Shown piece after piece: positions 1,202-60,047 of a stretch of 64,000 bases of DNA. Both the position numbers and the translations under genes were made by a program. The notes under the pieces are model-generated. The model did not search any database, was not told the origin of the DNA, and saw only the letters and a program-made list of their open reading frames with translations. Position 1 is the stretch's first letter. Every line of letters starts with the position of its first letter. The DNA is taken from assembly GCA_030390025.1 (NCBI GenBank), contig CM059449.1, positions 17,050,001 through 17,114,000 of the forward strand. The letters are read 5' to 3'. This DNA comes from Squalus acanthias. Lineage: Eukaryota.

Positions 1202-4200
1202 TCATGGCCAACGGATTACACCTGATAGATAAGAAAATTAACCAAATTATCAATTAAAATCAAATTAAATCGAAGGAGTAAGCGTTCGGAGTTTATTAAA
1301 AATGACAGGTTGCTCACGTTTCTTTCTGTCACCCACCTGTTTCATGGATCTCTGAGTAGAGCGGATCTGGACTGAAGCAAAAGAGGACATCAGAAAATTT
1401 AGGCATCCCAAACAATAAAATACATTAAAGAAAAAGAAAGTGGTTTTCTTTAAAAAAAAGTAGATCTATGTAAACAGTTACCTGGTGGGTTGCTGAAGAG
1501 CGACTGTGAGGAGAGAAAGACAAAGACAGAAATATTAAAGAGCTGAAGTTATTGATTATACCTGCAAGAAGCAACGGAAATAATTGGTATCGAAATAATT
1601 GAATCACATTTTGGGGGCAACTTTAACCAAACCCGCAGAGAAACGGACGGGATCGGGTGCAACGTTTTGAAGTCAAATGAGAGCAATATTGGGCGGGTCT
1701 AAACCCGGCGTTCCACCCGATACCCTGCGTTTCCCGCCCGGTGAGTTCGGATAAAATTATCAGAGAATTTGCCAACAACATGGAATTCAGTAGAGGTACA
1801 ATTAATGCTGTTACCTCTCTTACGATGCCGGCTGATAACAACTATGATTATGATGATGATGATGATCACGAGAGGCACCGCTACCGCTGCATAGACGAAT
1901 GGTTGGATCATTGGTGCGGACTCGCCGTGGCTGCTCTCTCCACCACCTGTGTGTAAATCTAAAGTTTCTTTTGTGAGACAGAGCAGTCAAGAGCAGGACA
2001 ATGGTCACATTGAGATTGAGGATCCGCAAATGGGACACAGATTCCCAATCCCCTTTGACATGCGGGGCTATTTCACACTGGCATACATCAAACTAGGCCA
2101 CGGATCAAAACGCAAAATGTCACCAGTGGGCAACAGGGGATATTCCCACCCTGGAAGTAACACTGGGGGAATTTTAATGTAGGGACGCTTAATGGGTTGG
2201 TGCCAGTTTCCTTTCATTTAAATAGCGGGGGGTGGGGTGGGGGTCGTGTGAGTTCTGTTAACATAGGAACATGAGGAGGCCATTCAGTCCCTACAGCCTT
2301 TTCCACCATTCAATGAGATCATGGCTGATCTGCGACCTAACTACATATAACCGCCTTTTGCCCCATATCTGTTAATACATTTGGTTAACAAAACTCTATC
2401 AATCTCCGATTTAAAATAAAAAATTGATCAGTTGTCGTTTGCGGAATAGAGTTCCAAACTTTTACCACCATTTGTGTGTGTAGAAGTGTTTCCTAATTTC
2501 ACCCCTGAAAGGTTTAGCTCTAATTTTTAAACCCTGGAGATCCAATAGGTCCAGAGCAAGAACGAGAAAATCTTCCCCTCGTATTTACGGGATGCTTAAG
2601 ACAAAACAAACATCTGGAAATTAGACGGGCCGAAACTGGGTGATCAACGTGGTTCTTCCGCGGACCAATCTTTGCATTTTGTTGGCGCAATGTTGTAATT
2701 TCTATTTACACACTCAACTATATCCGTCACTACCTTCATTTACAGCATGACAGTGAAATCTAACTTATCATACATGTGTTGTCCGGTTTATTCCCAATAT
2801 TGGTACGCGGTGATTTCAAGGCTCACATGTTGCTCTAATTACGGGGCTCCAGTCTTCGCCTCGCACACTGTAACTGGGTTGAATTCTTATCTATAGTCCT
2901 ACCTAAAATTGTATACAGCAACTGAATGTCATTAATATCCCCTCCATTTATTTATTTTAAAAGATCATTCTCGGGATACGGGCGACGCTGGCGAGGCGGG
3001 CATGTTATTGTCCATCTCTGCTTGACCCCTTCAGAAGGTGCTGGTGGGCCGCCTTCTTCTTGAACCGCTGCAGTCCGGTGTGGTGATGGTTCTCCCGCAG
3101 TGCTGTGAGGGAGGCAGTTCCAGGATTTTGGAAGGAACAGCGATACAAGTCCAAGTCAGGCTGGTGTGTGACTTGGCTGGGGACTTGGAGGTGATTATGT
3201 TCCCATGCGCCTGCTGCCCTTGACCTTCTAGGTGGTGGAGTTCGCGGGTTTGGGAGTTCCAATTGATCTGATGGAGAATTTACCTATACGGCCAATATTA
3301 CCCCCTAGTAAAATCCCACATGAATGCGTGCAATTTCATTGGTAAGAATATCTCCACCAATCCAAACTTACTCTGTTGACGCCGTTCCACGGTCACTGTT
3401 GTCCCGTGTCCCTCTGCTGCAGCGAATCCCACGAGCTGCACGTTGCAGAAATAGAACCCTGTATCTTCCGGTTTCAGCTGGATTATTCTAATGGACGCGT
3501 CTCTCCTCTGTCTGAAATCCTCTTCACTTGCCCCGAACACCCTGCCTCTGTATTCCGCTGTATTGTTGGAAACTTCATTTCCCTGTTTGGTGCCTCGGTG
3601 CCACGTGTAGCTGCCGATTCCTGTGGGACCCTCATATCTGCAGAGCAGGTCCGCTGTCTGTCCCGGGGTTTTGGTGAGTGATTGCGGGCTCTGAATTACG
3701 GTGATGTTTCCAACAGTAACTGCTGCAAGTGGGTAAAACAGACCATCTATAAATATACAGGGCACTTCTTTGCTTTAAAGCACGCCGTGGAAGGGCTGGT
3801 TTTAAGCAAATATTATTTCGGAGGATTTTTGATAAGGTATTCATGATCTTTAACTTGAGGGAATAAAAACAGAAAACACTGGAAACGCTCAGCAGGCCAG
3901 GCAGCATCTGTGGAGAGAGAAACCGAGTCAACGTTTCAGGTCGACGACTTTTCGTCAGAATTGGAAAAAGTTGGAGGTGTACCAGGTCTTAAGCAAGTGT
4001 AGGGGCAGGGAAAAGGGGGGAGGGGAGGAAAGAACAAAAGGGAAGGTCTGTGACAGAGTGGAAGGCAGGAGAGATGAAATAACACAAGGGATGATTGGGC
4101 AAGTAAAAAGGAGCTGGTAATGGGACAGGTAAAGAAACAAAAGATGGGTCTAGAAAAGGTTTAAATGGTTAACTTGAGGGATATTGGTGCTGGAGCTGGA

Positions 4201-6041
4201 GCGCCTTTGGTTTTTGGGCGCACTCCTCGGTCAAGTATAAAATGGATCTGGTACAAAGTACCTCTGACCCGTTCCAGATAATAAGCATTCACTTTAATTT
4301 CAGTTCTCCCGATATTCTTTCTGTGCTGCCCGCCGGTCTCATTAACACTTTGAGCGAGGGTGTGAAATGGGCAATCTCGAATTAAACGGCTTGCCCGATG
4401 TTCTCTTCCATTTGGGGGTCATTTTAACTTTAGGTGCTAAATGGTCGAGATCGGGTCGGCTGCCTGAAATTAAAATCGGGGCAGGTGTACACGGTCGCAC
4501 AAATTCAAAATCACCCCCAGGAAGTGAGGAGAAGTCTGATCTGATTAGTCTGATCAGATTGGAAGTCAGCTAGGTGCTAAACCCCAGCGACCTTCTCACT
4601 ATTAATCAGCGGTGACTGGAGATTATGGAAAATACAAACAGAATATTAATAGTCAAAATAATGAAACCGGCTAAATGTTACATGTACCGACATTACAAAT
4701 TGGATGAATGATTTCCCACTTTGGGTATATCTTGTACAATCGCCAATACCTCTTTAAAAACTGTTTACGGATCAGAGAAAATAGCCAATGCATTTGCGAC
4801 CTCATTGGAAGCAGCAAGCAGCGCAACTCTTGCCCTGTGTTGGTAAATAGAGAAAGGTTGTATCCAGTTAAATTACTGTAAATAATAGGAATTGAACAAA
4901 AAAAAGTCATGCCCCCTGGAAACGGGTCTTTACTTGAACACAGCCAGCACTGCAAATATTCACTATTGTGGATAGAGAATATTGGCATTTTTAGGTAGAT
5001 ATAATATCATAGAATCATAGAATAGTACAGCAGAGAAGGAAGCCTTTCGGCCCATCGAGTCTGCGCCGGCACTTTCGAAGAGCAATTCAGTTTGTCCCAC
5101 TCCCCCGCTCTTCCCCCTATCCCTGCAATATTTTTCATCATCAAATATTTGAATCTGTATCCACCACCCTATCAGGCAGAGTACTAGGGCAATCTGTACT
5201 TCAGGGAGCAACATACATTGTGCTCTCCTGGAACAAATACAATAAACCTCGTTATCCGAGAGCTGATCCGTCTCTCACGTTTAGCTCTCTCTATCTCTCT
5301 CTGTCTTCCTCAGTCTCTCTTTCTCTCTCTCACACACACGCACGATTGGAACCCATTTCTCTCTCTCTCTCTTTTCCTATTCCTATCCATTACTTGTTGA
5401 TTTAACCCGTCTACCCTCCCACTATTTCCAACCTTGATGCTGTCCTACGCCATGGGCCATGGGCCCTTCACTTAAATGCCTCAATTCAAAATAAGCAACC
5501 TCGAAAACGTTAGCTTCTCTGTGGCGAGCCCTGGTTAACTGCGAGATTGATTATATTACCAGCACAATAATCATTACCACGGCGCTGAGAAATGAAGATG
5601 GTTAATCTCGCGTCTATGAGAATGTCCGCACAAACCTGATGTTCTTTGAATTGCAGGCGAGCTGGTCATGAATATAAAATGGGTGAAATCCACAATCTGG
5701 TGCTGTGATCAGCAAATATGGGATATCGGAATAAGATTTAACCAGATACACATATAAGTAAGAAAAAATAGATGGGAGGACATCACTATGGCTCTTTAAT
5801 ATCTAATTAAGACATAGAATATTTTATTAAAGTCATTAAGAAATTATGGAAATTAAAATCAGTCCATTCCAATAACAGGCGGCCACTCCGCAACGCCAGC
5901 TTTACGCCCAGGCGGCAAGTTGAAAATCTACCCCATATTCTTGAATGGAGCTGATGTATCAGAAATAAGCTTACCGGAGAACATAGCGAATGCCCAGGTA
6001 ACTGCAGCCCAATTCATTCTCCCTTTCGGCGGCGATATCAT
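1202..6041 (-). CDS. NKp30/NCR3-like single V-domain receptor, gene 1 (inhibitory-type). Model: join complement(5975..6041, 3372..3722, 1815..1946, 1482..1503, 1337..1371, 1202..1221)
   Basis: All introns are GT-AG with consistent phases (1,1,1,2,1). Protein: MISPPKGRMNWAAVTWAFAMFS-AVTVGNITVIQSPQ...LLC...TW...DTGFYFCNVQLVGFAAAEGHGTTVTVERRQQ-SGGESSHGESAPMIQPFVYAAVAVPLVIIIIIIIIVVISRHRKR-VALQQPT-SPDPLYSEIHET-GVIRWP*. The last exon is the least certain. Confidence 0.8.
1337..1503 (-). CDS. Gene 1 cytoplasmic mini-exons (22 nt, 1482-1503; 35 nt, 1337-1371) encoding VALQQPTSPDPLYSEIHET
   Basis: Both exons have pyrimidine-rich acceptors and GT donors, with phases 1-2 and 2-1; YSEI motif. Confidence 0.72.
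1815..1946 (-). CDS. Gene 1 stalk/transmembrane exon (uncharged TM)
   Basis: 132 nt, phase 1-1, acacag/gtaac. TM FVYAAVAVPLVIIIIIIIIVVI is followed by the stop-transfer sequence SRHRKR. Confidence 0.85.
2262..2530 (-). mobile_element. CR1 LINE 3' fragment
   Basis: Antisense of the same 3' UTR (atcagccatgatctcattgaatggtgga) found at 18470-18530. Confidence 0.7.
2965..3260 (-). mobile_element. LINE 3' fragment, second family (also at 9555-10060, 13862-14180, 20676-21420, 63708-63952 on minus; 55926-56075 on plus)
   Basis: Shared block gagaaggtggtggtgagccgccttcttgaaccgctgcagtcc; the longer copies encode MEYSPLAWMSAAPTTLKKL (RT C-terminus). Confidence 0.75.
3372..3722 (-). CDS. Gene 1 Ig V-set (VJ-type) exon
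   Basis: 351 nt, phase 1-1, ttgcag/gtaagt boundaries. B-strand Cys, C-strand Trp, DTGxYxC and GxGTxVxV G strand; close in pattern to the NKp30 ASxxI...YxCxVxxxGxxxxxGxGT motif. Confidence 0.92.
3862..4168 (-). mobile_element. Penelope-like terminal repeat with a minimal hammerhead motif
   Basis: Minus strand tctgacgaaaagtcgtcgacctgaaacg followed by ctctctccacagatgctgcc; family copies at 14592-15250, 27010-27385, 32335-32690 and 56712-57080. Confidence 0.7.
5975..6041 (-). CDS. Gene 1 leader (signal peptide) exon
   Basis: ATG at 6041 (or 6017) reads (MISPPKGR)MNWAAVTWAFAMFS+G into a phase-1 gtaag donor; resembles the gene 3 leader (W..AM..G). Confidence 0.75.
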
Positions 6042-6185
6042 TTCAGAAAAGAAATTCAGGTAGTGTACAGACAGGAATATTTAAGTAATGCAGTGGGAGA
6101 GTGAACCTGAGTCAGAGTCCGGATGTGAGAGAATGGAAAAAAAATGAATTGCAAGCTGTTTATACAACCGCAGTTATCTCTCTCG

Positions 6186-6214
6186 CACATGGTTCTGTCT
6201 CTCTCTCTCGCTCT

Positions 6215-6245
<31 letters not shown>

Positions 6246-6246
6246 G
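6186..6246. repeat. (CT)n/(CA)n microsatellite just upstream of gene 1
   Basis: Direct reading. Confidence 0.9.
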
Positions 6247-6319
6247 CATTCTCTCTCAAGGACAGTTCGCAGCAGATACTCACACGCGGGGTAGATTCTT
6301 GGCCTCACCCGTAACCTGG

Positions 6320-6870
6320 GTACGTAACTGACCACGGGATAGGAGGCAGAGAGTCGTGGATGTTTCTGTCACTGGTGAGAAGTATACAATGGGGTTCCCC
6401 AGTGATTGGTATTAGGACCATTGCTTTTCTTGTTATATAGAAATGTTCTGGACTTGGGTATAGGGAGCACAATTTAGAAATTTGTGAATGATGCAATAAT
6501 TGGTAACATAGTAAATAGTAAGAGGGACAATAGCAGACTTCAGGAGGACATAGCCTGATGAAATGGGCAGGCACATGGCAGATGCAATTGAATGCGGCTA
6601 AGTGTGAAGTGATGCACTTTGAGAGGAGCAACATGGAGAGGCACTGTGACCTAAATGGTGATATTTTGAGGGGGTGCAAGTGCAGAGAGACCTGGGTGAG
6701 CATATTCACAAATATCTGAAGGTGGCAGGGCAAGTTGACAAGGCAGTTAAGAAAGCGTGTGTGATACCTGGCTTTGTCAATCGGGGCATTGAATACAAAA
6801 AGAAAAAAGTGAAGTTAAGCCTTTACTAATCACTGGTTAGGCCTCAGCTTTTGTATTGTGTACAATTCCC
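6320..6870 (+). mobile_element. Degenerate CR1 RT fragment
   Basis: GVPQ..VLGPL, WQMQLNAAKCEVMHF and AGQVDKAVKKA motifs. Confidence 0.8.
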
Positions 6871-6894
6871 GTTTTCTGGTTTAGAAAGAAAAGA

Positions 6895-7345
6895 AGGAAT
6901 TGCATTTATATAGCGCCTTTCACCAGCTCAGGATGTTCGAAAGTGCTTTCCAGCCAATGAAGTACTTTTTGGAGTGTAGTCACTGTTGTAATGTAAGAAA
7001 CGCGGCAGCTAAATCTGTGGACAGCAAGCTCCAACAAACAGCAAGGTGATAATGATCAGATAATCTGTTTTATAGTGATATTTATTGAGGGATAAATTTT
7101 GGCCCAGGACACGGGGAGAACTCCCCCTGCTCTTTTTCGAAATAGTGTCGTGGGACCTATTACATCCACCTGAGAAAGCAGACGGTTTAACCTCTCATCC
7201 GAAAGAAGGCACATCCGACAGTGCGGCGCTCCATCAGTACTGCCACTGGAGTGTCAGCCTAGATTTTTGTGCTCAAGTCTCTGGAGTGGGACTTGAACCC
7301 ACGACCTTCAGAGACTCAAGCGCTACCCGCTGAGCCATAGCTGAA
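6895..7345 (-). mobile_element. Deu-domain SINE, near full length
   Basis: tRNA head (tggctcag...ggttcaagtccc), core ctttcggatgagaggttaaaccg, tail aaggcgctatataaatgcaa. Confidence 0.8.
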
Positions 7346-8029
7346 TCCTAAAGGGGTCCTGTTCCTTAATTTCACTTCACACGCACATAGTCAAGAGCTC
7401 CCTTTACAGTTTCCCTAATGTGCGTTGAGTTTTCCTTTCCCGATCCTTGCTCTCTCTGAAGAATTTGTCACATTGCGTGTACACACACATATATATATAT
7501 ATATACATAACTCTAACTGCAACAGCAGTGCTGGGTTGACTGGGCGTGTATGAGCGTATGTCTGTGAGAGAGAGGTCTGTGCAAACTGTGTGCGTGCGAA
7601 TCAGAAGGATAGTAAGGGCTTTCTGCACAGAGTATCTGACAGCTTGTCAGGGTCTGCAACGACCTGCGAGCTATTGATGTTCGTGGCCCTGGTGTCAGTC
7701 AACACGTTGACTCCGCTCTGCGGTCAGCTACGTGCCAAGAGTGAAGCTGTGTGGGCGTCGAGCTCTTCTTTGCACAACCCAACCTGTTAACCTGAGCGAG
7801 TATTTTGAAAACTCGCAGATGAAGTCCTATAAATATTCTAGCGAGATCGACAACTGACTGAAATGTGTTTATCGCTGAACGCTACAGATCGTGAGGTGTG
7901 AACTGTGGGTGGGTAACTGCAGAGAATCATCTCGCAAATATTTCCACTGCTTTAGTGCGAGGCCTATTTTGCCTTAAAGCAAATCTAGAGGCCAATGATA
8001 TATCAAATAGGGAATTCAGAAGAAGCTTC

Positions 8030-8613
8030 TTATAGAATTACAGAACGGTTACAGCGCAGAAGGGGACCATTCGGCCCGTCGAGCCAGTGCCGGCTCTCTG
8101 CAAGAGCACTTCAGCTAGTCCCACTCCCCCGCCCTTTCCCCGTAGCCCCGCAATTTTCTTTTCCTTCAGGTACTTATTCAATTCCCTTTTGGAAGCCACG
8201 ATTGAATCTGCCTCCACCAGCCTCTCAGGCACTGCATTCCAGATCCTAACACCTCGCTGCATAAAAAAGATTTTCCTCATGTCGCCTTTGGTTCTTCTGC
8301 CAATCACCATAAATCTGTGTCCTCTGGTTCTCGACCCTTCCGCCAATGGGAACAGTTTTTCTCTATCTGCTCTGTCTAGTGCCCTCATGATTTTGAACAT
8401 CTCTATCAAATCTGCTCTCAATTTTCTCTGCTCTAGGGAGAACAACCCCAGCTTCTCGAGTCTATCCAAGTAACGGAATTTCCACATCCCTGGAACCATT
8501 CTTGTAAATCTTTTCTGCACCCTCTCTAAAGCCTTTACATCTTTCCTTAATTGGACACAATACTCCAGTTGTTGCTGGACCAGTGTTTCATAAAGGTTCA
8601 TCATAACTTCCAT
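8030..8613 (-). mobile_element. CR1 LINE 3' end
   Basis: ORF 8038..8613 LEYCVQ...LERVQKRFTRM...WNAVPERLVEA. Confidence 0.9.
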
Positions 8614-8766
8614 TGATATGAAAAGGTAAATCGGGTGGGGTTTATTACAGGCTGCCGATCCGCCACTGCCCGTTTTCTGCTCCCAAAGGAAGTTGACATT
8701 TGACCCTGCTGTTCTTTTTCCAGTTGCTCTCCCCTATTTGTAACTACAGTGTTGATTTATCCCAGT

Positions 8767-8812
8767 ATAGGTTCTGGTCGTCCTACCGCAGCATTACAGT
8801 ATCTTGGGACAG
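8767..8812 (+). pseudogene. Candidate decayed leader exon of gene 2
   Basis: Reads as (M)VLVVL-[frameshift]-AALQYLGT+G into a cag|gtaact phase-1 donor; there is no intact ATG. Confidence 0.3.
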
Positions 8813-10404
8813 GTAACTCTTAAAAGTACAGGATTCTTTTTTTAAAGTTTGGCTAGAATAAGTAGCAAAAAAGCACTAATCATGTCGTGCCCGTCGAAAG
8901 CGCTCTGCAAGTGAAAGGCATGCTGTTGGATTTACACAACTGGGCTCAGCACCATTCCGTGACATGTGGCCAACACATGTTCATGTTTCAGACAATTGCC
9001 AGGCACTATTCATTTAAATCAAACCTGAGTACTATCACCGGTTCTCATTTACAAACTCTGCGCCCTCTAAGTTCAGTCTAATAAATTTGTCATTGTTTAA
9101 ACAGGTGCAAGATGAGTTTCAATCCCCCGGGTGCGTAAACACCCACTGAAATTAGTGAAGGATGAAACTGAACTGCGAGGCGTTATTCCTTTGTTTCAAT
9201 GTTCCGCTTGTGTAATGTTAAAGTAGTGCTTCTTTCTTAAGTATTCTTAAAATATGACGTTTCCGACTACAATTGGAAAACGTGCGTAGTGAACAGAGTT
9301 CCTCTGTGCTTTGTTAAACCACCAGTAGGTTTCGTCATATAAGTGAACGTCTGCTGAGGGATGTTTGCTAAACTTAACAGCACTTTCGGACGCTGCAGGT
9401 CAGATGTTAGCTCGTAGTGTTCTGCGGAGCAAGAATGAAAATGCCTCCTATTCGCATGTGGAAGTTGTTGAATTAACGGAACATACTTTTGCCTGTCGGT
9501 GAGCCGCTGTCTTCTGATGTACACATTTTAATGTTTTTTCGGTCTTTTTAAATTCGCTTATGGGTTCTGTGCGTCGCTGGCAAGGCCAGCATTTATTGCC
9601 CATCCCTAGTTGCCGTTGAGAAGGTGGTGGTGAGCCGCCTTCTTGAACCGCTGCAGTCCGTGTGGTGAACGTTCTCCCACAGTGCTGTTAGGTAGGGAGT
9701 TCCAGGATTTTGACCCAGCGACGATGAAGGAAGGTGTGTGTCTTGGAGGGGAACTTGGAGTTGGTGGTGTTCCCATGCGCCTGCTGCCCTTGTCCTTCTA
9801 GGTGGAAGAGGTCGCGGGTTTGGGAGGTGCTGCCAAAGAAGCCTTGGCTAGTTGCTACAGTGCATCTTGTAGATGGTACACACTGCAGCCACGGTGCACC
9901 GGTGGTGGAGGGAGTGAATGTTTAAGGTGGTGGATGGGGTTCCAATCAAGTGGGCTGCTTTGTCCTGGATGGTGTTCGAGCTTCTTGAGTGTTGTTGGAG
10001 CTGCACTCATCCAGGCAAGTGGAGAGTATTCCATCACACTCCTTACTTGTGCCTTGTAGATGTTGGAAATTCTATATTTATTAAGGCGTACGATTATTTG
10101 TTTGGGCAGGTTGTTTCCTTATGCGGAACTAATATATAACGAAGTTACATTGTGTAAAAAAAACGGTTTTATTTTATTATGCTGTGTTACTTTGCGTTGA
10201 ATCCACCATTTCAACGGTATAAGCTTTTTATCTTTCGGGGAACTTTATATTATACAATTAACGTTCTCTTCCATGCAGATGCTGTGAATTTGCATTTTAC
10301 AATTAACATAATTAATAGGGCCTACTAAAACGTACTTATGGAAATAAATTAACTCACGGACTCCTAAATGACTGTGTTGCACATGGAATTATCTGACATA
10401 TAAT

Positions 10405-11144
10405 GGCCCAAAAATTAGTCCCGCTACGCGAGAGTACGCACTGCGTACTCTCGCGTATTCTGTCACCAATTGCCGGTTTTCTGCATGCACTGCGCATGCG
10501 CTGAAAACCGGCACTTGGTTTTTGGAAAAGGGGGCGGTTCCTCGGTGCACCGCGTGCGCGCTAAAGGCTGCGCGCACGCTGTGCACTTAGTGCTTTGAAC
10601 GCGCAGGTAAGGACGGAAGATTTTAGAAATGAAAAAAGGAGGAGTAAGACCCACTTTTAACAAGGTAAGTAGTGAATTAAGTATTATTTTGAATTTTTTT
10701 TAACAGGTATATCGTTTTTAGAGACTTTAAAGACAGGTAAGTTTATTTTTATAACTTTTTAAAAGATTTTAAATTTTTTCAAAAATTTTAATTTTTATTT
10801 AAAATGGTTAATTTATTTAACTATACTTATTTTATTAATGTGATTTTTTTTTAAATTTAATTGAGGTTTAGCTGTTATTTTGGGTGTGTGTAAGATTCAT
10901 AGCTTTCACAGCACGTATGTGAAACTTATGAATGGAAGATGGTGTGCTGCCATTGGCTCTAACTGAGTCACGTGATCCAACAGCTTGCACGAATTCACTA
11001 CGCCGGTGGGATACGCAAGCACTGCCCAGCTGATGTCTCGAACATCAAGTTCGTGCGAGCTGGATCTGAAAAAGCCAACGCGGAGTGAGAGATCGCGGGG
11101 AAGCCTTACCCCCGCGTCAACACTTAGCCTTTAATTTCTGGGCC
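10405..11144. mobile_element. Putative non-autonomous DNA transposon (MITE-like)
   Basis: Terminal inverted repeats ggcccaaaaatta / taatttctgggcc (12/13 match), GC-rich palindromic subtermini, AT-rich core. Confidence 0.5.
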
Positions 11145-12857: not shown

Positions 12858-12917
12858 ACTGGTCTGTAATTCTGTAGGTCACTTTTGACAGATTGCATTG
12901 TTCCATTTATACTCCAG

Positions 12918-13255
12918 ACAATGGGTTGATGAGTGGAATCAGAGTGTTCCAGTCCCCAGATGCCATCAATGTAATAGAAGGAGGATCGGTACAGCTGAAC
13001 TGCACTTTTGAAGCGAATAATACTGTCGGACGAGTTGTTTGGAGGCGGGCCTCACAAAACATGGAAGTGTCGGTTCGGAATCCTTTCTATCAGAGCCGGA
13101 TAACGAAGTCAGGGTCGAAATTGTTTGCAGAAAAAATGGCTTTCATTGAAATGATCAATTTACTGACAATGGACTCGATTTTTACTACTGCGAGGTGGAA
13201 ATTCCGGCGCTTGGGAAAGCAAGCGGGACAGGAACACAACTTATAATAACTGACA
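12918..13255 (+). pseudogene. NKp30/NCR3-like gene 2 V exon with a 1-nt frameshift
   Basis: ctccag/gtgagt boundaries; 338 nt, one short of 339. IRVFQSPDAINVIEGGSVQLNC...VW...DS, then a frameshift at ~13177-13183, after which the other frame reads FYYCEVEIPALGKASGTGTQLIITD. Confidence 0.88.
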
Positions 13256-15250: not shown

Positions 15251-15347
15251 GGCAGAATGATCGACCACCCCACCATTTTCTTGCATTATCTTTCACTTCA
15301 ACCAAGCGCCACCATACTGACTATATTATTGTTTCTGTTTCTAACAG

Positions 15348-19060: not shown

Positions 19061-19104
19061 TAGTAAATTTGTAACACTTTCTCCATCACCTTTTATTCCC
19101 ACGG

Positions 19105-22100: not shown

Positions 22101-22269
22101 TAAGAATTTCTTGTTTGTTCATTGTCTTTCCACAGACTTCTCTCCACCTTTGCAATGATGCGTAGATATCACTGTGACATTTTGCTGCCTTTATTTTCAT
22201 GGCACGTACCGCGTGTCCTCCCTTTGTGGTTCAGTGATGAAGAGGTCTATGCCGAAATCCCCCCGCATG
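19105..22269 (+). pseudogene. Array of four cytoplasmic mini-exon pairs: 19105-19129/19246-19280; 19506-19527/19614-19663; 20402-20423/20526-20560; 22136-22157/22235-22269
   Basis: Sizes 25/35, 22/50, 22/35 and 22/35 nt, phases 1-2/2-1 as in gene 1. Products: xLEPARLQRNIAPCRNIIFN, ELAPQAQRPWMDIAGSAYDDINPA, DVPPPLGMNEPFCDETNLD, DFSPPLQCDEEVYAEIPPH. Several splice sites are mutated (cacgg, atcagt, atgcgt). Confidence 0.68.
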
Positions 22270-49400: not shown

Positions 49401-50106
49401 TGATTCTAAATTCTGCACCTCCTTAACAGAGCTGTGCTGCTATTGCGCAACATTAACAGGAAATGCTGAAAGTGCTCAACATGTCAGTCGACATAGAATC
49501 ATAGAACCATAGAAAGTAACAGCACGGAAGGAGCCATTTCGGCCCATCGTGTCTGCGCCGGCCAACAAAGAACTACCCAGCCGAATCCCACTTCCAGCTC
49601 TTGGTCTGTAGCCCTGCAGGTTAGAGCATGCCACGTGCACATCCAAGTACTTTTTAAATGTGGTTAGGGTTCCTGCCTCTACCACCCTTTCAGGCAGTGA
49701 GTTCCAGACCCACACAACGCTCTGGGTGAAGAAATGTCCCCTCAAATCCCCTCTATACCTTCCACCAATTAATGTAAATCTGAGCCCCTTGGTTTTTGAC
49801 CCCTCTGCTGAGGGAAATAGGTCCTTTCTATCCACTTTATCTGTGCCCCTCATAATTTTATACACCTCAATAAGGTCTCCATCTAGCTTCCTCTTTTCCA
49901 AGGAAATGAGTCCTAGCCTATCCAGTCTTTCCTCTTAGCTAAGATTCTCTAATCCCAGGAACATCCTTGTAAATCTCCTCTGTACCCTCTCTAGTGCAAT
50001 CACATCTTTCCTTAATGTGGTGACCAGAACTGCACGCAGTACTCTAGCTGAGGCCTAACTGTGTTTCATACAGTTGAAGTATAAACCCCCTGCTCTTGTT
50101 TTCTAT

Positions 50107-50191
50107 TGAGAGGTCGCACAACACCAGGTTATAGTCCAACAGTTTTATTTGAAATCACAAGCTTTCGGAACTATCGCTCCTTCCTCAGGTG
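50107..50191 (-). mobile_element. Single-arm copy of the same Penelope-type repeat
   Basis: Minus strand cacctgaggaaggagcgatagttccgaaagcttgtgatttc; flanked by duplicated ttttctat. Confidence 0.7.
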
Positions 50192-52168
50192 TTTTCTATG
50201 CCACGGCTAATAAAGGTAAGCATTCCGTATGCCTTCTTAACCACCTTATCTACCTGGTCTGCTAACTTCAGGGATGTGTGGGCATGCATTCTAATATCCC
50301 TCTGTTCCTCTATGCTTCTCAGTATCCTACTATTAAATGTGTATTCCTTTGCCTTATTAGCACTCCCCAAGTGCATCATACTTCTCCAGATTTTTTCTAA
50401 TTCCTTCACAGGATGTCGGCATTGCTGGGAAGGCCAGCAATTATTGCCCATCACCCAATTGCCCTCGTGACGGTGGCGGTGAGTTGCCTTCTTGATTAAG
50501 TGGCTTGCTAGGCCATTTCAGAGGGCAGTTAAGAGCCTACCACATTTCTGTGGGTCTGGAGTCACATATAGGCCAGGCTAGGTACGGACGGCAGATTTTC
50601 TTCCCTAAAGGACACTGCTGAACCAGATGGATTTTTACGACCATCTGGTAGTTTCATGTAATTTGTGTAATTCATTGAAATTAAATTCTTCAGCTGCAGT
50701 GGTGGTGATATGAACTCATATCTCCGGATCATTAGTCCAGGACCCTGAATTACTAGACCAGTTACATAACCATTATGGTACCGTACCCCCAATTCCATTT
50801 GCCACTTTTCTGCCCAGCTGATCAGCCATTGATATATTCCTGCATTCTACAGCATTCATCTTCATTATCAACCAAACCGTCAATTTTTGTATCATCTGGA
50901 AACTTCTTCATCATGCCCCTTAATTGAAGTCTATATCGATTCTATCTTTTAATGTAGTATAGGTGCAAGATAGTAATTCTTTCCAAGTGATTGATTAACA
51001 TTCTCTGAATCAAGGTGTATAAAATTATGAGGGGTCTAGTTAGAGGGGATAGGAAGGACCTATTTCCCTTAGCAGAAGGGTCAATAACCTGGGGACATAG
51101 ATTTAAAGTAATTGGTAGAAGGATTAGGGAGGATTTGAGGAGAATGCTTTCAACCAGAGGACGGTGGGGATCTGGAACTCACTGCCTGAAAGCGTGGTAG
51201 TGGCAGAAACCCTCATCGCATGTAAACTGTACTTGGATATACACTAGAAGTGCTGTAACCAACAGGGCTACGGACCAAGAGCTTGAAAGTGGGATTAGGC
51301 TGGAGAACTGTTTTTTGGCCGGCACAGTCAGGTTGGGACGAATGGCCTCCTTCTGTACCATAAACTTCTATGATTATAAGAAGCCTATATTTGTGAAGGA
51401 GGAGGGATGGTCCTGGTTATGTTAAGCTTATGGATTTTTAATGAGCTGCAAGACGACCATTCTTGACTTGAATCTAAGTTCAGCAGCTCCTGACAGTGCC
51501 GTGTTGCTATTGCAAAACATAAACAGGAAATGCTGAACGTGCTCAGCATGTCAGTCAACATAGAATCATAGAAAGTTACAGCACGGAAGGAGCCATTTCG
51601 GCCCATCGTGTCTGCGCCGGCCAACAAAGAACTATCCAGCCTAATCCCACTTCCCAGCTCTTGGTCCGTAGCCCTGCAGGTTAGAGCATCCCAGGTGCAC
51701 ATCCAAGTACTTTTTAAATGTGGTTAGGGTTCCTGCCTCTACCACCCTTTCAGGCTGTGAGTTCCAGACCCCCACAACCCTCTGGGTGAAGAAATTTCCT
51801 CACAAATCCCCTCTGAACCTTCCAGCAATTATTGTAAATCTGTGCCCCTTAGTTATTGACCCATCTGCTAAGGCAAATAGTTGCTTTCTATCCACTTTAT
51901 CTGTGCCCCTCATAATTTTATACACCTCAATAAGGTCTCCACCAAGCCTCCTCTGTTCCAAGGAAAACAGACCCAGCTTATCTAGTCTTTCCTCATAGCT
52001 AAGATTCTCTATTCCCGGGAACATCCTTGTAAATCTCCTCTGTACCCTCTCTAGTGGAATCACATCTTTCCTGTAATGTGGTGACCAGAACTGCACGCAA
52101 TACTCTAGCTGAGGCCTAATTAGTGTTATATACAGTTGAAGTATAACCCCCCTGCTCTTGTTTTCTAT

Positions 52169-52368
52169 CACCAGGTTATAGTCCAACAGCTTTATTTGAA
52201 ATCACAACCTTTCGGAGCGCTACTCCTTCGTCAGGTGACTTCACCTGACTAAGGAGCAGTGCTCCGAAAGGTTGTGATTTCAAATAAAGCTGTTAGACTA
52301 TAACCTGGTGTTGTGCGACTTGTCACTTTTGTCCACTCCAGTCCAACGCCCGCATCTCCTCATCATGG
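52169..52368. mobile_element. Penelope-type inverted terminal-repeat insert with hammerhead cores and a 12-bp TSD
   Basis: 70-bp inverted arms 52169-52238 / 52241-52310; TSD cttgttttctat; the minus arm reads cctgacgaaggagtagcgctccgaaagg. Confidence 0.75.
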
Positions 52369-55300
52369 CTTGTTTTCTATGCCACGGCTAATAAAAGCAA
52401 GCATTCCATATGCCTTCTTAACATCCTTACCTAACTGGCCTGCTACCTTCAGGGATCTGTCGGCATGCATTCCAACGCCCCTCTGTTCCTCTATTCTTCT
52501 CAGTATCCTACCATTTAATGTTTATTCCTTTACCTTATTAGCACTCTCCAAGTGCCTCATACTTCTCCAGATTTTTTCTTATTCCTTTCCAGGATGTGGG
52601 CATTGCTGGGAAGGCCAGCATTTATTGCCCATTCCCCAATCGCCCTCACGAAGGTGGCGGTAAGTTGCCTTTTTGAATAAGTGGCTTGCTAGGCCATTTC
52701 AGAGCGCAGTTAAGAGCCTACCACATTTCTGTCGGTCTGTAGTCACATATAGGCCAGATTAGGTAAGGACGGCAGATTTCCTTCCCTAAAGGACATTAGT
52801 GAACCAGATGGGTTTTGACGACAATCTGGTAGTTTCATGTAATTTGTGTAATTCATTGAATTTAAATTCTTCAGCTGCAGTGGTGGTGATATGAACTCAT
52901 ATCTCCGGATCATTAGTCCAGGCATCTGAATTACTAGACCAGTAACATAACCATTATGGTACCGAACCCCCAATTCCATTTGCCACGTTTCTGCCCAGCT
53001 GATCAGTCCATTGATATATTCATGCATTCTACAGCTTTCATCCACATTATCAACCAAACGGCCAATTTTTGTATCATCTGCAAACTTCTTCATCATGCCC
53101 CTTACTTGTATCTCTCTCGATTATATCTTTTAATGTAGTATCGCTGCAAGATAGTAATTCTTTCCAAGTAATTGATTAACATTCTCTTAATCGAGGTGTA
53201 TAAAATTATGAGGGTCCTCGATAGAGTGGATAGGAAGGACCTATTTCCCTTAGCAGAAGGGTCAATGACCAGGGGACATAGATTTAGAGTAATTGGTAGA
53301 AGGATTAGGGAGGAATTGAGGAGAATGCTTTCACCCAGATGGTGCTGGGCGTCTGGAACTCACTGCCTGAATGTGTGGTAGAGGCAGAAACCCTCATCGC
53401 ATTTAAACTGTACTTGGATATACACTAGAAGTGCTGTAACCTACAGGGCTACGGACCAAGAGCTGGAAAGTGGGATAAGGCTGGACAGCTGTGATCGGCC
53501 GGCACAGTCAGGATGGGCCGAATGGCCTCCTTCTGTGCCATAAACCTCTATAATTATAAGAAGCCTATATTTGTGAAGGAGGAGGGATGGTCCTGGTTAT
53601 GTCAAGCACATGGATTTTAACGAGCTGCAAGACAACCATTCGTGACATGATTCTCCGTTCTGCACCTCCTTACAGAGTAGTGTTGCTGTTGCGAAACATA
53701 AACAGGAAATGCTGAAAGTGCTCAGCATTTCAGTCGAACCAGAATCATAGAATCATAGAAAGTTACAGCACGGAAGGAGCAATTTCGGCCCATCGTGTCT
53801 GCGCCGGCCAACAAAGAACTACCAGCCTAATCCCACTTCCCAGCTCTTGGTCCGTAGCCCTGCAGGTTAGACATCTCACGTGCACATCCAAGTACTTTTT
53901 AAATGTGGTTCGGCTTCCTGCCTCTACCACCCTTTCAGGCAGTGAGTTCCAGACCCCCACACACCTCTGGGTGAAGAAATTTCTCCTCAGATCCCCTCTA
54001 AACCTTCCACCAATTAGTGTAAATCTGTGCGCCTTGCTTTTTGACCCCTCTGGTAAGCGAAATAGGTCCTTTGTGTCCACTTTGTCTTTCACCCTCATAA
54101 TTTTATACATCTCAATTAGGTGTCCCCTCAGCCTCCTCTGTTCAAGGAAAACAGTCCCAGCCTATCCAGTCTTTCCTCATAGCTAGGATTCTCCAAGCCC
54201 AGCAACATCCTTGTAAATCTCCTCTGTACCCTCTCTAGTGCAATCACATATTTCCTGCAATGTGGTGACCAGAACTGCACGCAGTACTCCAGCTGAGGTC
54301 TAACTAGTGTTTTATACAGTTGAAGTATAACCCCCCTGCTCTTGTTTTCTATGCCACGGCTAATAAAGGCAAGCATTCCGTATTCCTTCTTCACCACCTT
54401 ATCTACCTTGCCTGCTACCTTCAGGGATCTGTGGTCATGCATTCCAAGGACACTCTGTTCCTCTATGCTTCTCAGTATCCTACTATTTAATGTGTGTTCC
54501 TTTGCCTTATTAGCACTCCCCAAGTGCATCATACTTCTCCAGATTTTTTCTTATCCCTTCACAGGATGTGGGCATTGCTGGGAAGGCCTGCATTTATTGT
54601 CCGTCCCCCAATTGCCCTCGCGAAGGTGGCGGTGAGTTGCCTTTTTCAATATGTGGCTTGCTAGGCCATTTCAGAGGGCAGTTAAGAGCTTACCACATTT
54701 CTGTCGGTCTGGAGTCACATATAGGCCAGATTAGGTAAGGACGGCAGATTTTCTTCCCTAAAGGACATTAGTGAACCAGATGGGTTGTTACGACAATCTG
54801 GTAGTTTCATGTCATTTGTAATTCATTGAATTTAAATCCTTCAGCTACAGTGGTGGTGATATGAACTGATATCTCCGGATCATAAGTCCAGGCCTCTGAA
54901 TTACTAGACCAGTAACATAATCATTATGGTACCGTACCCCCAATTCCATTTGTTACTTTTCTGCTCAGCTGACCAGTCCATTGATATATTGCTGCATTCT
55001 ACAGCTTTCATCCTCATTATCAATTAAACGGCCAATTTTTGTATCATCTGCAAACTTCTTCATCATGCCCCCTACATTGAAGTCTATATCGATTATATCT
55101 TTTAATGTAGTATCGCTGCAAGATAGTAATTCTTTCCAAGTAATTGATTAATATTCTCTTAATCAAGGTGTATAAAATTATGAGAGGCTTAGAATGAGTG
55201 GATAGGTAGGACCTATTTCCCTTAGCAGAAGGGTCAATAACCAGGGGACATAGATTTAAAGTAATTGGTAGAAGGATTAGGGAGGATTTGAGTAGAATGC

Positions 55301-55369
55301 TTTCACCCAGAGTGTGGTGGGGGTCTGGAACTCACTGCCTGAACGGGTGGTAGAGGCAGAAACCTCTCA

Positions 55370-55925: not shown

Positions 55926-56711
55926 TGGTACTCCCTCCCTAACAGGACTGTGGGAGTACCTTCACCACACGGACTGCAGCGGTTCAAGAAGGCGGCTCAC
56001 CACCACCCTCTCAAGGGCAATTAGGAATGGGCAATAAATGCTGGCCTTGTCAGCGACGCCCGCATCCCATGAATATTTTAAAACTATGTGGCTGATTCTC
56101 CTGTTCCTGCGCATAGGACTATTGAAACCCCTGAGCGCAGCGAATGCAGCAACATCGGACAGGATGTGGTTAGGGGCGTCTGCTGCTCTCCACCCGCTTT
56201 TCCTGCATTGGTTGCGCCCAGGCGCAGGAACGGGGAAAGACTGCCCCTTAAACTTTTATGCGTTCACTTTCATGCAAGCCCATATATTTTCTCCTGTGGG
56301 CCATTTGCAACGAGTTCTAAGATCTTGCAGGGAAGAGGAAAATAGCAGACAATAATGTGCTTTATTATGATCAAATCTATTGCAAACAGTTCCCAAATAT
56401 TAACTCAATATTTCCAATGCGGCCGAAATTCCACCATAACTTCAACTGAGATCGAGGGAAACTACAAATTGCTCTTTTATATTACTGCTAATGCATACAG
56501 TTTTTTTATACGACTGCATATTTAAATGTGCATTTGTAAGTTTGCGGTTCGGCATCACAGTCGCTGCAATTTCAATTCAAACTATTCTGTTGAATAGTGA
56601 TTGGTATTTGACACGAGTATTTTGCTAAACTAGCCCATTTAAAAAAGGAAGTTTTCCGTCCTGTCAACGCGGTTTACAATTCAGCCCGGGTCTCAGCTTT
56701 TGAGCTATAAA

Positions 56712-57080
56712 TAACAACAGAAAACGCGGGAAAAACTCAGCAGGCCAGGCAGCATCCGTGGAGAGAGAAACAGAGTTAACGTTTCAGGTCGAAGACCTTT
56801 CGTCAGAACTGGAAAAAAGCAGGAAATGAAATAGATTTAAAGCAAGTATAATGCTGGGGAAAGGGGGTTTGGATGAAAGAACAAAAGGCAAGGTCAGTGG
56901 TGGGATAGAAAGCAGGAGAGATTAAGAGACATTAAGAGATAATCAAGGCAGGAGGAGGTGGTAATGTGACAGGTTGAGGCTAGTTGAAGTGTGAGATGCG
57001 CTGGCAGAATGAAGGACAGCTGCCAGCTTCTGGGAGGGAAGAAAAAAGGCCAAACAAAAGGGTTCGCTATAATCCCCGCA
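56712..57080 (-). mobile_element. Penelope-like terminal repeat with an intact minimal hammerhead core (56780-56809)
   Basis: Minus strand: ttCTGACGA a aggtc-ttc-gacct GAAAcg. Confidence 0.7.
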
Positions 57081-57507
57081 TGCTTCATTGCTGCCTCTGT
57101 ATCTCTCACTCCTGGCCTGTTCTGATTTATCTCCGAATGCACATTCATTAATAGGTCAGCCAGACATCTGGCTTAGCAGCTTTAAGCCAGAAGTGTCTCC
57201 CACGCTTTCCTTTTCTGCGGAAGATTTTGATTTTGCAAGTTCTCCGCGCAGTTAATTTCAGTTACCATGGACACTGAAGTACAACTGAAGTGGATTCCAA
57301 ACCACAGCTTGTGCCTGGTATTCTGGCATCTATGTCCCTGCAGAGGCGGGAACAAATCAAAACCGAGAATGCCAATTGGGCGATTGGGTCCGTTACGTCA
57401 CATACTGTGTCATGCGCCTCTCCACAGTTAGAATTCGATTGTTATTTTTCTCTGATCCTGCACTGCTGTTCCTCAACTGACTTCATGCCCAGAACTGTGC
57501 AGACACC

Positions 57508-57559
57508 ATGAACTTTAGCCATGTTATTGGAACAATCTGGGTAACGGCTATGATCGCCG
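57508..57559 (+). CDS. Gene 3 leader exon
   Basis: 52 nt (17 codons + 1), good Kozak context, gtaagg donor. Confidence 0.78.
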
Positions 57560-60047
57560 GTAAGGAACTATTTTATGTTATGTCGGTTTCCAATTGCAAG
57601 ATGAGAGTACAAACCGGAAAGAAAGCAACATCCTCTTGTAGCGCATTCTTATATTGTTTCATTTGTTAAATTCAAGTACTCTTAGATATTATGATCCGCA
57701 CGCGGATAAATAAATAGGGCGTTAAGCTTTAAAAAGAAATCAATGGTACCGAAAGGACAGCTTTCCAAACTTGAAATGGTTGACGTGACTGAGAAATGTG
57801 CCGATTTCAAATACATACACGCGCAATGATCACCGAGCCATTATTGTTTAGCAACCCTCGCCGACAATCAAAGCTGGCGCCCATCTTAAGTGAATGGCCC
57901 AAAATTGCAAGGAATTAAATCAACATTTTGAAATAACACAGATCCGAATAATTTCTTAATATCATTGAGGGGCCTAGATAGAGTGGATAGGAAGGATCTA
58001 TGTCCCTTAGCAGAAGGGGTCAATAACCAGGGGGCATAGATTTAAAGTAATTGGTAGAAGGTTTAGAAGGGAGTTGAGGAGAATTTTCTTCACCCAGAGG
58101 GCGGTGGGGGTCTGGAACTGAATGCCTGAAAGGGTGGTAGAGGCAAAAAACCTCATCGCATTTAAAAAGTACTTGGATATGCACTTGGAGTGTTGTAAAC
58201 TACAAGGCTACAGACCAAACGCTGGAAAGTGGGATTAGGCTGGATTGCTCTTTGTCGGCCGGCGCGGACAAGATGGGCCGAATGGACTCCTCCTGTGACG
58301 TAAATTTCTATGATTCTATGATTTGATTTATTCCCAATCCTTTTATTTCGGTGTTCTGAAGTGATAATAAGATGAAAAATAGCCGATATATTAAGAATGT
58401 AACGAAGCAATTTTAAAAAACGCCATAAGTGTGTTAGAATATAAAGCCATGATAGTGTCAGAGAACTAAACTAAGCTTCTAAATGCACGGGTCAACTATT
58501 GTTAAAATCCTACTTTCAGCTTTCCTATCGATGACACAAAATATATCTGGACTGGAAAGGGTGCATTGAGGAGCAACAAAACCCTTCCGAAGTGTAAAGA
58601 GATGATACGTGAGGAGAGATAAGCGAAGCATAAGTGTTTCAGTCTTAAAATAAGGCAGTTAAGTGCCGGGGGCGGCGGGGGGTGAGTGTGGCGCGGGGGG
58701 GGGGGGGGGGGGGAATTTAATCATAAATGCTATAGATAAAGTGCATCCCGATTATTCCGTCGAAGCCATGAAAGTAGAATCAGATCCATCAATGGGTAAT
58801 AGTGAAAAGGGACATTTTAAGCTAAAAGCAAGAACAACGTGTTTGTCTCAAAACTTGTAGGAATTTATATAGCGCGCAATAGAGGTAAATATTGGGGCTA
58901 CTCAAAATGCAATTAAATGCCGTGGCGGGAGTTCGTGTATCTAATGGTAGATTTTGATGGGTTGAGGGACATTTTCTCGTCACAGGCTTTTTAAGTGCCT
59001 TTAGAGCCATGTTTTATTGCACCAACTAACAACACGGGCTATATACAGTCAATGTCACTGTATTAATATCCGTGTTTTTCTAAATATATTTGAACAATGT
59101 ATCCTTAAAAATTGCCATTCGGCAGAGTGGCGGCGCGCACGCCTCGCTCAACTGTAACAATACTGATAATTTTTAAAGGTTTAAGGACTCTTTTAAACGC
59201 TGCGAGCATTCATGCCTAATATAGGAAGCAGTACTTTCCAGGGCAAAAGATCTCACCCCACTGTGTATTGTATTGACTTCACCCATCCACAGCAGTTACT
59301 GTTGGAAAAATCACCGTAATTCAGAGCCCGCAATCACTCACCAAAACCGCGGGACAGACAGCGGACCTGCTCTGCAGATATGAGGGTCCCAAAGGAATCG
59401 GCAGCTGCACGTGGCACCGAGGCACCAAACAGGGAAATGAAGTTTCTAACAATACAGCGGAATACAGAGGCAGGGTGTTCGGGGCAAGTGAAGAGGAATT
59501 CAGCCAGAGGGGAGACGCGTCCATTAGAATAATCCAGCTGAAACCGGAAGATACCGGGCTCTATTTTTGCAAACTGGAGCTCTTGGGATTCGCTGCAGCA
59601 GACGGACCCGGGACAACAGTGACCGTGGAACGGGGTAAGTTTGTATTTTTTTTGAAAAGTAGACGGGTTCTTTTAAGTGCGAGAGGTGTGCCCTGCCAGG
59701 TTACCACCCAGGATGGTAACGGCGAACTTCCAGCCCGGAGGACGTCTTAGCCCCCTTGCGTTACTCGTTGCCTTGGACCAGAAAGCGATAGGGAGATTTT
59801 TTAGACCTGTTATTCCATAGGTGCCGAAACGGAATTTAAGATAATGAGCAACGAAGAGCCTACAAGCTTCTTCAGCGACGTCCGGATTCTATGGTGTGTC
59901 CGTGCTGCAGTGATAGCTTTACTGGTCGTTTTTGGAATCATCGTCGCTATCTATCTGCTTCCGTCAGAAGAGGTACTGGTAGCGAATGTCAATATATGTA
60001 TTATTTACTGTTTGGGACGCATGGAAAAGTATTTTACAATTGTTTAG
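57508..60047 (+). CDS. NKp30/NCR3-like single V-domain receptor, gene 3 (activating-type). Model: join(57508..57559, 59293..59634, 59821..59972 or read-through to the stop at 60047)
   Basis: caccATG start; leader MNFSHVIGTIWVTAMIA+G|gtaagg; 342-nt V exon; TM exon GAETEFKIMSNEEPTSFFSDVRILWCVRAAVIALLVVFGIIVAIYLLPSEE with an intramembrane Arg placed like NKp30 (LLLRAG). Confidence 0.85.
57955..58322 (+). mobile_element. CR1 3' end in gene 3 intron 1
   Basis: RVDRKDL.PLAEG...WN..PERVVEA coding end plus a ttctatga tail. Confidence 0.85.
59293..59634 (+). CDS. Gene 3 Ig V-set (VJ-type) exon
   Basis: ccacag/gtaagt, phase 1-1. AVTVGKITVIQSPQSLTKTAGQTADLLCRYEGPKGIGSCTWHRG...DTGLYFCKLELLGFAAADGPGTTVTVER; 17 nt differences from the gene 1 V exon. 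Confidence 0.92.
59821..59972 (+). CDS. Gene 3 stalk/TM exon with Arg
   Basis: ttccatag acceptor, phase 1, hydrophobic ILWCVRAAVIALLVVFGIIVAIYLL. The 3' end is uncertain (GAG|gtactg donor or read-through to 60047). Confidence 0.82.

Follow-up and report, generated by a model that had tools for sequence, protein, structure and literature searches.

Two divergently oriented NKp30-like receptor genes of Squalus acanthias share a nearly identical V exon and differ in their transmembrane and tail exons

NKp30 (NCR3) is among the few natural killer (NK)-cell receptors conserved from sharks to humans. In the SIRP alpha/beta system, a tail with an immunoreceptor tyrosine-based inhibitory motif (ITIM) is set against a charged transmembrane segment. 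For the nurse shark, Kinlein et al. reportedly described a multigene NCR3 family in 2021. Here we analyse a 64-kb stretch of Squalus acanthias DNA, hereafter the window (contig CM059449.1 of assembly GCA_030390025.1, positions 17,050,001 to 17,114,000 of the forward strand), in which two NKp30-like genes, named gene 1 and gene 3, share an almost identical variable (V) exon and are unrelated in all their other parts. The closest described systems are the following. In human NKp30, a transmembrane arginine pairs with CD3zeta or FcRgamma and the tail is short (PMC6514059), and the fold places helix alpha2 by the F and G strands, forming a groove for B7-H6 (Li et al., PMC3135353). Nurse-shark NCR3 genes are listed as MT914154-914161 in a 2025 paper (PMC12227049), and two of the proteins they encode, QTT61898.1 and QTT61904.1, were recovered in the present searches. 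Siglec-5/14 and Siglec-11/16 are neighbouring inhibitory and activating genes whose extracellular parts have been matched by conversion and whose transmembrane segments and tails differ (PMC5701461, PMC4042635), and in receptors of the CEACAM1/CEACAM3 type the ligand-binding domains of ITIM-bearing and activating members coevolve, both in mammals and in Xenopus (PMC2832619, PMC5112662).

The window contains no N, and its content consists of NCR3-like genes and repeats only. Gene models were built exon by exon, and each exon was compared separately. Gene 1 (reverse strand) and gene 3 (forward strand) stand head to head; their start codons, at 6017 and 57508, are separated by about 51.5 kb. Their exons are listed below.

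5975..6017, reverse strand: gene 1 leader exon, MNWAAVTWAFAMFS plus 1 nt, phase 1, donor GT, located by a pattern search derived from the leaders of shark relatives
3372..3722, reverse strand: gene 1 V exon, 351 nt, phase 1-1, VJ-type immunoglobulin (Ig) V domain with the C-terminal end GHGTTVTVERRQQ, AG/GT borders
1815..1946, reverse strand: gene 1 stalk and transmembrane exon, 132 nt, phase 1-1, uncharged transmembrane segment PFVYAAVAVPLVIIIIIIIIVVIS followed by RHRKR
1482..1503, reverse strand: gene 1 22-nt tail micro-exon, ALQQPT, phase 1 to 2, placed by AG/GT borders and frame, with a counterpart in ATLQQPE of the bamboo-shark protein P0157
1337..1371, reverse strand: gene 1 35-nt tail micro-exon, (S)PDPLYSEIHET, phase 2 to 1, with a stop after GG if the donor is read through
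1202..1221, reverse strand: uncertain candidate last exon of gene 1, taken from the model of the original prediction, G VIRWP stop, with a good acceptor and an immediate stop
57508..57559, forward strand: gene 3 candidate leader exon, MNFSHVIGTIWVTAMIA plus 1 nt, phase 1, donor GTAAGG
59293..59634, forward strand: gene 3 V exon, 342 nt, phase 1-1, C-terminal end GPGTTVTVER
59821..59972, forward strand: gene 3 stalk and transmembrane exon, (G)AETEFKIMSNEEPTSFFSDVRILWCVRAAVIALLVVFGIIVAIYLLPSEE, weak donor GTACTG

The V exons of the two genes differ at 17 of 339 shared in-frame bases and at 14 of 113 residues (88% amino acid identity), and the gene 1 exon carries nine additional bases (RQQ) ahead of its donor. 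When positions 1-12000 were compared with the whole window by blastn, the sole match between gene 1 and gene 3 was 3379-3725 against 59636-59290 (94.8% over 347 nt, expectation value (E) 3.6e-156), all remaining matches within the window being interspersed repeats. Specifically, a word-7/9 search between the two oriented gene regions returned six matches: besides the V exon, these were a repeat piece of 68 nt and four stretches of 16-26 nt. In an alignment extended by 200 nt of flank, the similarity faded within about 15 nt on the upstream side of the V exon and about 10 nt on its downstream side. The leaders, introns and transmembrane and tail exons are unrelated at the DNA level. A tblastn search of the window with the open reading frame of the gene 1 V domain recovered, apart from itself, the gene 3 exon (84.9% over 119 residues including flanks, E 4.5e-66) and a third V sequence at 12938-13282 (29%, E 1e-7); the other three matches had E values of at least 0.59. 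The original prediction had described two divergent genes about 51 kb apart with near-identical V domains and unrelated transmembrane and tail exons, and all of this is borne out. Exon translations likewise agree with its account of an uncharged transmembrane segment and an LYSEI tail in gene 1, and of an intramembrane arginine with no clear signalling tail in gene 3.

Both V domains belong firmly to the NKp30/NCR3 family, as judged by sequence, predicted fold and tree. They match the Pfam V-set (E 2.6e-13 for gene 1 and 9e-13 for gene 3), and their four best relatives of solved structure are human NKp30 entries (E 3.1e-13 to 4.5e-13), followed by antibody V domains from 1.4e-11 and by SIRP at 3e-9. 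An AlphaFold model, made for the gene 1 V domain only from a 40-row alignment, has a mean confidence (pLDDT, predicted local distance difference test) of 92.1 and carries, at residues 66-72, a helix at the place of NKp30 helix alpha2. Submitted to Foldseek, this model retrieved NKp30 chains as its top four matches (TM-score 0.79-0.84, root-mean-square deviation (rmsd) 2.1-3.2, identity about 29-33%), the next being SIRP alpha (TM-score about 0.75, rmsd about 4). A whole-library HMMER search gave 363 matches at E<=1e-3, of which 67 reached 1e-10 and 11 reached 1e-30; none was similar enough to come from Squalus acanthias itself. The top matches were all from sharks, namely Scyliorhinus XP_038671257.1, the nurse-shark NCR3 QTT61898.1 (73-75% identical to the gene 1 V domain), Heterodontus and Chiloscyllium, and the weaker ones included NCR3 of horse, hamster, lizard, turtle and sturgeon. 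In addition, each V domain ends, within its single phase 1-1 exon, in the J-like motif G-x-G-T-x-[VL]-x-V (GHGTTVTV in gene 1, GPGTTVTV in gene 3); among 40 aligned family sequences G104, T107 and V111 are invariant and G106 is kept in at least 90%. The prediction of NKp30-like receptors with a single V domain is therefore confirmed by the best PDB sequences, by the four top Foldseek matches and by the position of both genes in a shark NCR3 clade, described below. In a survey of the transmembrane segments of relatives, covering proteins of up to 520 residues (P0001-P0080 plus later rows with a charged segment), an Arg or Lys in the transmembrane segment together with a short tail was seen in family members of horse, hamster, lizard, turtle, sturgeon, bichir and sharks. 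Gene 1 lacks this NKp30-type charge, and gene 3 has, as read from its sequence, a charged segment and a short tail.

The V-domain phylogeny, which had been proposed as a check, was built from 24 V domains of 19 labelled proteins out of 164 stored, the V of the neighbouring gene 2 being excluded for its frame change; alignments had to cover more than 95 query positions for identities and at least 85 for the tree. Genes 1 and 3 fall within a nine-row shark clade (support 94/92), in which they are sisters (98/98). Their V exons are separated by a synonymous distance (dS) of 0.038 (three synonymous changes) and a replacement distance of 0.056 (14 changes), so that the ratio dN/dS is 1.47, and because of these values purifying selection cannot explain the V identity. 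Across shark orders the leader types sort by gene type and the V exons by species: the bamboo-shark protein P0008 has the gene 3 type of leader, its V domain is 58% identical to that of gene 3, and it groups with orectolobiform sequences. Since dS is low, the flanks cannot be aligned, and leaders follow gene type but V exons follow species, the comparison points to gene conversion limited to the exon, and homogenisation confined to the V exon is a well-supported reading of these data. Each leader type has counterparts in other shark orders, and both genes therefore look older than the V exon they share.

The direction of change was assessed with six outgroup sharks from the nine-row clade, P0017 being left out. 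At the 14 differing sites, the outgroup state is kept by gene 1 at ten and by gene 3 at two, the other two being undecided, and the branch lengths are 0.028 for gene 1 and 0.11 for gene 3. Human contact positions were transferred through a phmmer alignment to NKp30 and the contact table of PMC3135353 (Table II). Four of the 14 differences fall on the 11 positions aligned to contacts of human NKp30 with B7-H6 (P 0.030), namely Y38C on Val53, R70S on Leu86, Q95E on Glu111 and V97L on Leu113 (human numbering). Nine lie within the 31 of 113 residues formed by the model helix 66-72 and the F, FG and G elements (P 0.0023, post hoc). In conclusion, gene 3 has taken most of the V changes, and these are located in the parts of the domain that build the B7-H6 groove of human NKp30. 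Selection for changed binding and a relaxed constraint on gene 3 would both fit this pattern.

Turning to the individual genes, gene 1 appears from its exons to be the local counterpart of the tyrosine-tail NCR3 lineage of nurse, bamboo, horn and cat sharks. Its exon borders are AG/GT and its phases run in order (1, 1-1, 1-1, 1-2, 2-1). The leader resembles MHWIAVTW.. of the nurse shark, MHWVAVSW.. of the catshark and MDWAAVTW.. of the horn shark. The transmembrane exon, translated as ...PFVYAAVAVPLVIIIIIIIIVVISRHRKR with no charge in the membrane segment, matches the transmembrane segment of nurse-shark NCR3 QTT61898.1 (57.6% over 33 residues, E 8.8e-9; tblastn E 5.6e-8). The 35-nt exon corresponds to SSDPLYAEMHE of bamboo-shark P0157 (72.7% over 11 residues), to be compared also with SNPLYADMHD of nurse-shark P0004. 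No homologue was found for the candidate last exon at 1202..1221, where relatives run on as GETNY...VQYAEI...MVYAKV. Specifically, the tails of clade members from bamboo, horn and cat sharks extend to VQYAEI, VQYATL or MQYAQL and then to MVYAKV or VLYATV; nurse-shark QTT61898.1 ends four codons past its tail motif, without an ITIM. In the window, 1336 nt are left 3' of the 35-nt exon, partly repeat. Gene 1 may be cut by the start of the window, with ITIM exons perhaps lying beyond it; alternatively, it may make a short form only, like the nurse-shark entry. As a separate observation, the gene 1 transmembrane segment contains eight consecutive Ile encoded by ATC/ATA repeats (1840-1866, reverse strand), a microsatellite-like tract that could differ in length between alleles.

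Gene 3 is, on the other hand, the predicted member of a second lineage, with a leader exon of its own, a transmembrane exon bearing an Arg and a short tail. A strict search at gene 3 for a leader like that of gene 1 found none, and the leader at 57508 comes from a looser scan, which offered two candidates in the stretch from 56 kb to the V exon. By eye, ten of its 17 residues are the same as MNFSHFTGNIWIMTMIT, which stands immediately before the V domain of Chiloscyllium punctatum GCC38509.1; this protein, whose model ends after the V domain, is the sole counterpart of the gene 3 leader among the stored proteins. The V domain retains both Cys, the Trp and the J-like GxGT. The transmembrane exon has an in-phase acceptor 186 nt past the V exon and an open frame of 75 codons, and its 25-residue hydrophobic run holds a single Arg at the sixth position. 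The translation ...SDVRILWCVRAAVIALLVVFGIIVAIYLLPSEE (ILWCVRAAV...) contains no tyrosine motif, reading through the donor adds 24 residues up to a stop at 60045-60047, and no further tail exon was found. Word-index searches started from the gene 1 V domain (two unscored candidates), nurse-shark P0004 (five proteins) and bamboo-shark P0008 (four proteins) gave no protein of Squalus acanthias itself and no full-length protein of the gene 3 type.

Three side observations concern the same gene. In its V exon, the N-terminal N-glycosylation sequon of gene 1 is lost (NIT to KIT at 59307-59309, forward strand), and the exchange Y38C (59406-59408, forward strand) adds a third Cys two residues ahead of the invariant Trp. 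A G-rich tract (58670-58715, forward strand), in which about 20 G follow one another, lies between the leader and V exons.

By comparing these structures with the systems introduced above, human NKp30 emerges as the nearest to the V domains, since it is their best match by both sequence and fold and likewise has a single Ig domain with a J-like GxGT. It resembles gene 3 in its transmembrane Arg and short tail (PMC6514059). It differs in the low identity of about 29-33%, in the uncharged transmembrane segment and tyrosine tail of gene 1, and in the presence of several genes here versus one. Gene 1 and nurse-shark QTT61898.1 have, besides the V identity of 73-75%, the same leader type, transmembrane exon, 22- and 35-nt tail exons and DPLY-type motif. 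Nurse-shark QTT61904.1 resembles gene 3 in its charged transmembrane segment (Lys) and nine-residue tail, but its V domain is far more distant, so that gene 3 combines a QTT61898-like V domain with a charged transmembrane segment. Unlike the locus described here, the Siglec pairs belong to another Ig family, bind sialic acid and are known from primates, and the signs of their signals are experimental. The CEACAM receptors are again of another family, and their activating members use ITAM-like tails (ITAM, immunoreceptor tyrosine-based activation motif) and not a charged transmembrane segment. SIRP alpha/beta provide the next-best fold and sequence matches after NKp30, and several shark relatives have been automatically named SIRP-like; SIRPs, however, have three Ig domains, and the shark V domain superimposes better on NKp30 (rmsd 2.1-3.2 versus about 4).

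One stored relative deserves a remark of its own. The catshark protein XP_038671257.1 of Scyliorhinus canicula (P0001, a RefSeq model of 469 residues) looks like a fusion of two adjoining NCR3-like genes, one half having an ITIM-type tail and the other a transmembrane Arg (SARILGVFILFF) with a short tail; both designs would thus stand side by side in the catshark.

Sequencing reads were examined over 57401-63400, the gene 3 region, for four of six listed runs, which are small and none of which is recorded as RNA (sampled-word shares 0.17, 0.07 and 0.06). Depth was high on repeats only and zero on unique non-coding stretches, and coverage of the V exon came from short contigs. A contig from run X1, 155 nt long, equals 59292-59446 with no differences, across four sites that separate gene 3 from gene 1. 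Two contigs of run X2 (355 and 226 nt) align up to 59292 and up to 59633, respectively, with nine and eight differences, and then run on into sequence absent from 57401-63400. Since these V-exon contigs stop at the exon borders, they appear to be spliced, and those of X2 resemble transcripts from a paralogue, for example gene 1.

The explanation that we consider best overall, and on which we are evenly divided between acceptance and doubt, is that the window covers one section of a shark NCR3 (NKp30) gene cluster that has expanded, and in which conversion of the V exon has kept two genes working as paired receptors. According to this explanation, gene conversion (or replacement) limited to the V exon would recently have made the two copies of it alike, after which the gene 3 copy would have taken most of the residue changes, mainly in the helix and the F-strand/FG-loop that make up the ligand groove in human NKp30. 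Both receptors, presumably co-expressed, would share a B7-H6-like ligand or bind closely related ones. The transmembrane Arg of gene 3 would recruit an Asp-bearing ITAM adaptor of the CD3zeta, FcRgamma or DAP12 type for signalling, and gene 1 would signal via the tyrosine motifs of its tail. The locus has near-identical ectodomains in neighbouring genes, one of which has a predicted charged transmembrane segment without a signalling tail, and these ectodomains are matched by a conversion signature (dS, flanks, the sister grouping and the leader types) at signalling ends that differ. An activating role of gene 3 is plausible from its sequence anatomy, and an inhibitory role of gene 1 is unproven within the window. 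Of the paired activating/inhibitory NKp30-like system that had been predicted, therefore, the family, the matched ectodomains, the unrelated ends and the gene 3 Arg stand, and inhibition by gene 1 stays a hypothesis.

Several results weigh against a working pair. For gene 3, a blastp-short search with the transmembrane exon against 156 stored proteins gave nothing significant (best E 0.30), an Atlas search with the same exon gave no usable match, and against a profile of 17 charged NCR3 transmembrane segments its segment scored 1.5 bits (gene 1, 1.0), which is not significant and is reached by 109 of 1000 whole-exon and 335 of 1000 transmembrane-only shuffles. The excess of dN/dS over 1 is not significant (Fisher P 0.77), nor is the clustering of the differences towards the 3' end, after in-frame base 260, in a maximum chi-square permutation (P 0.076, against a naive binomial P of 0.008); relaxed constraint on gene 3 would also fit both results. 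The closest partner of either V exon may, moreover, lie outside the window. One alternative concerns the V exon itself: in it, a single recent exon insertion, or a whole-gene duplication followed by replacement of the other exons, took the place of conversion between old genes. From two sequences alone, conversion and a one-off exon replacement look the same, but the flanks become unalignable within a few nucleotides of the exon and both leader types have counterparts in other shark orders, and we regard this alternative as decidedly improbable. Greater weight, if still on the unlikely side, is due to the possibility that gene 3 is decaying or out of use, either as a V exon flanked by relic exons or as a donor or acceptor of conversion, so that there is no working pair. 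It is favoured by the changes on gene 3, which include D68E, R73G and F89L at sites invariant in the six outgroup sharks, as well as Y38C, by its weak donor and its transmembrane exon devoid of a homologue, and by the frame change already present in neighbouring gene 2. Mapping of reads to the splice models, proposed as a check, bears on it in both directions: the leader and transmembrane exon bins of gene 3 have zero depth in all four runs, but in runs this small such gaps in the contigs prove nothing, and the X1 contig reproduces the gene 3 V allele exactly. The three exons of gene 3 are, in addition, open, with AG/GT borders and matching phases, and its V domain has kept the residues noted above.

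The remaining points concern the tail of gene 1. The consensus of an ITIM has I, V, L or S at position -2 of the Tyr, and PLYSEI has Pro there, so that this motif is not a canonical ITIM, as the original prediction had rightly stated. Moreover, tblastn with the tails of P0001, P0005, P0007 and P0157 found no canonical ITIM exon in the window, the only credible matches being the transmembrane exon and the 35-nt exon, and neither gene has an ITIM or ITSM (immunoreceptor tyrosine-based switch motif) of canonical form there. In addition, the Tyr of PLYSEI is replaced in the horn shark (PDPINAEI) and in the catshark (SDRLCAEV), which makes its role uncertain. These data leave room for a third alternative, as unlikely in our judgement as a decaying gene 3, in which gene 1 is non-inhibitory and its YxxI/M motif is an endocytosis signal (YxxO, read by AP-2) or a docking site for Src-family kinases or PI3K; what distinguishes the two genes would then be trafficking or the type of positive signal, and not the sign. 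YSEI and the orthologous motifs YADM of the nurse shark and YAEM of the bamboo shark all fit YxxO sorting signals, the latter two also fit YxxM, and NPLY of the nurse shark fits NPxY. The early end of nurse-shark QTT61898.1, soon past its motif, points the same way. The relatives of the same clade in bamboo, horn and cat sharks, however, carry ITIMs downstream, and a long ITIM-bearing isoform of gene 1 is plausible for this reason.

Between these two genes lies gene 2, whose exons were identified as follows.

12917..13255, forward strand: gene 2 V exon, a distant NCR3-family V domain (..YYCEVEIPALGKASGTGTQLIITD), 29% identity, related to horn-shark P0016
19246-19280, forward strand: gene 2 tail micro-exon, from an exon scan
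20402-20423, forward strand: gene 2 tail micro-exon, from the same scan
20526-20560, forward strand: gene 2 tail micro-exon, from the same scan
22235-22269, forward strand: gene 2 last tail micro-exon, from the same scan, DEEVYAEIPPH

The micro-exon peptides NIAPCRNIIFN, VPPPLG, NEPFCDETNLD and DEEVYAEIPPH match the tail of horn-shark P0016 (QSNIAPC.. 73% over 15 residues; DEEVYAEIPP against DEEVHSDIPP). The V exon has a frame change near 13142-13152, inside an A-run, and gene 2 is either a pseudogene or the product of a homopolymer assembly error. Much of the intergenic space is filled by a tandem array at 41628-55369, made of about seven units of about 2 kb that are 84-91% identical and contain fragments of reverse-transcriptase-like open reading frames. 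Copies of an interspersed repeat, each about 300 nt long and 77-86% identical to one another, lie at 3862-4168, 14939-15246, 27094-27381, 32370-32676 and 56710-56974, one of them in gene 1 intron 1 and another upstream of the gene 3 leader.

The novelty originally attached to this locus was set too high, because a nurse-shark NCR3 with a tyrosine tail (QTT61898.1) and one with a charged transmembrane segment (QTT61904.1) had already been deposited. The NCR3 family and both designs in sharks are already known, as are conversion-matched pairs in Siglec and CEACAM, and the gain here is a well-defined example together with its conversion signature. Tentatively, and with more doubt than belief, we propose that in this shark an adaptor-coupled NKp30-like receptor and one with a tyrosine tail are kept matched by repeated conversion limited to their V exons, and that the adaptor-coupled copy then diverges fast in the B7-H6-type groove. 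A pair consisting of an Arg-bearing transmembrane receptor and a tyrosine-tail receptor with a freshly homogenised ligand-binding exon offers a testable case for the age of paired-receptor logic, and it also allows a test of the B7-H6 groove as the target of divergence. If the proposal is true, the arms-race logic of an inhibitory and a fast-evolving activating receptor, found in mammalian Siglec, CEACAM, KIR and SIRP, would already have been in place on the NKp30 scaffold near the base of the jawed vertebrates.

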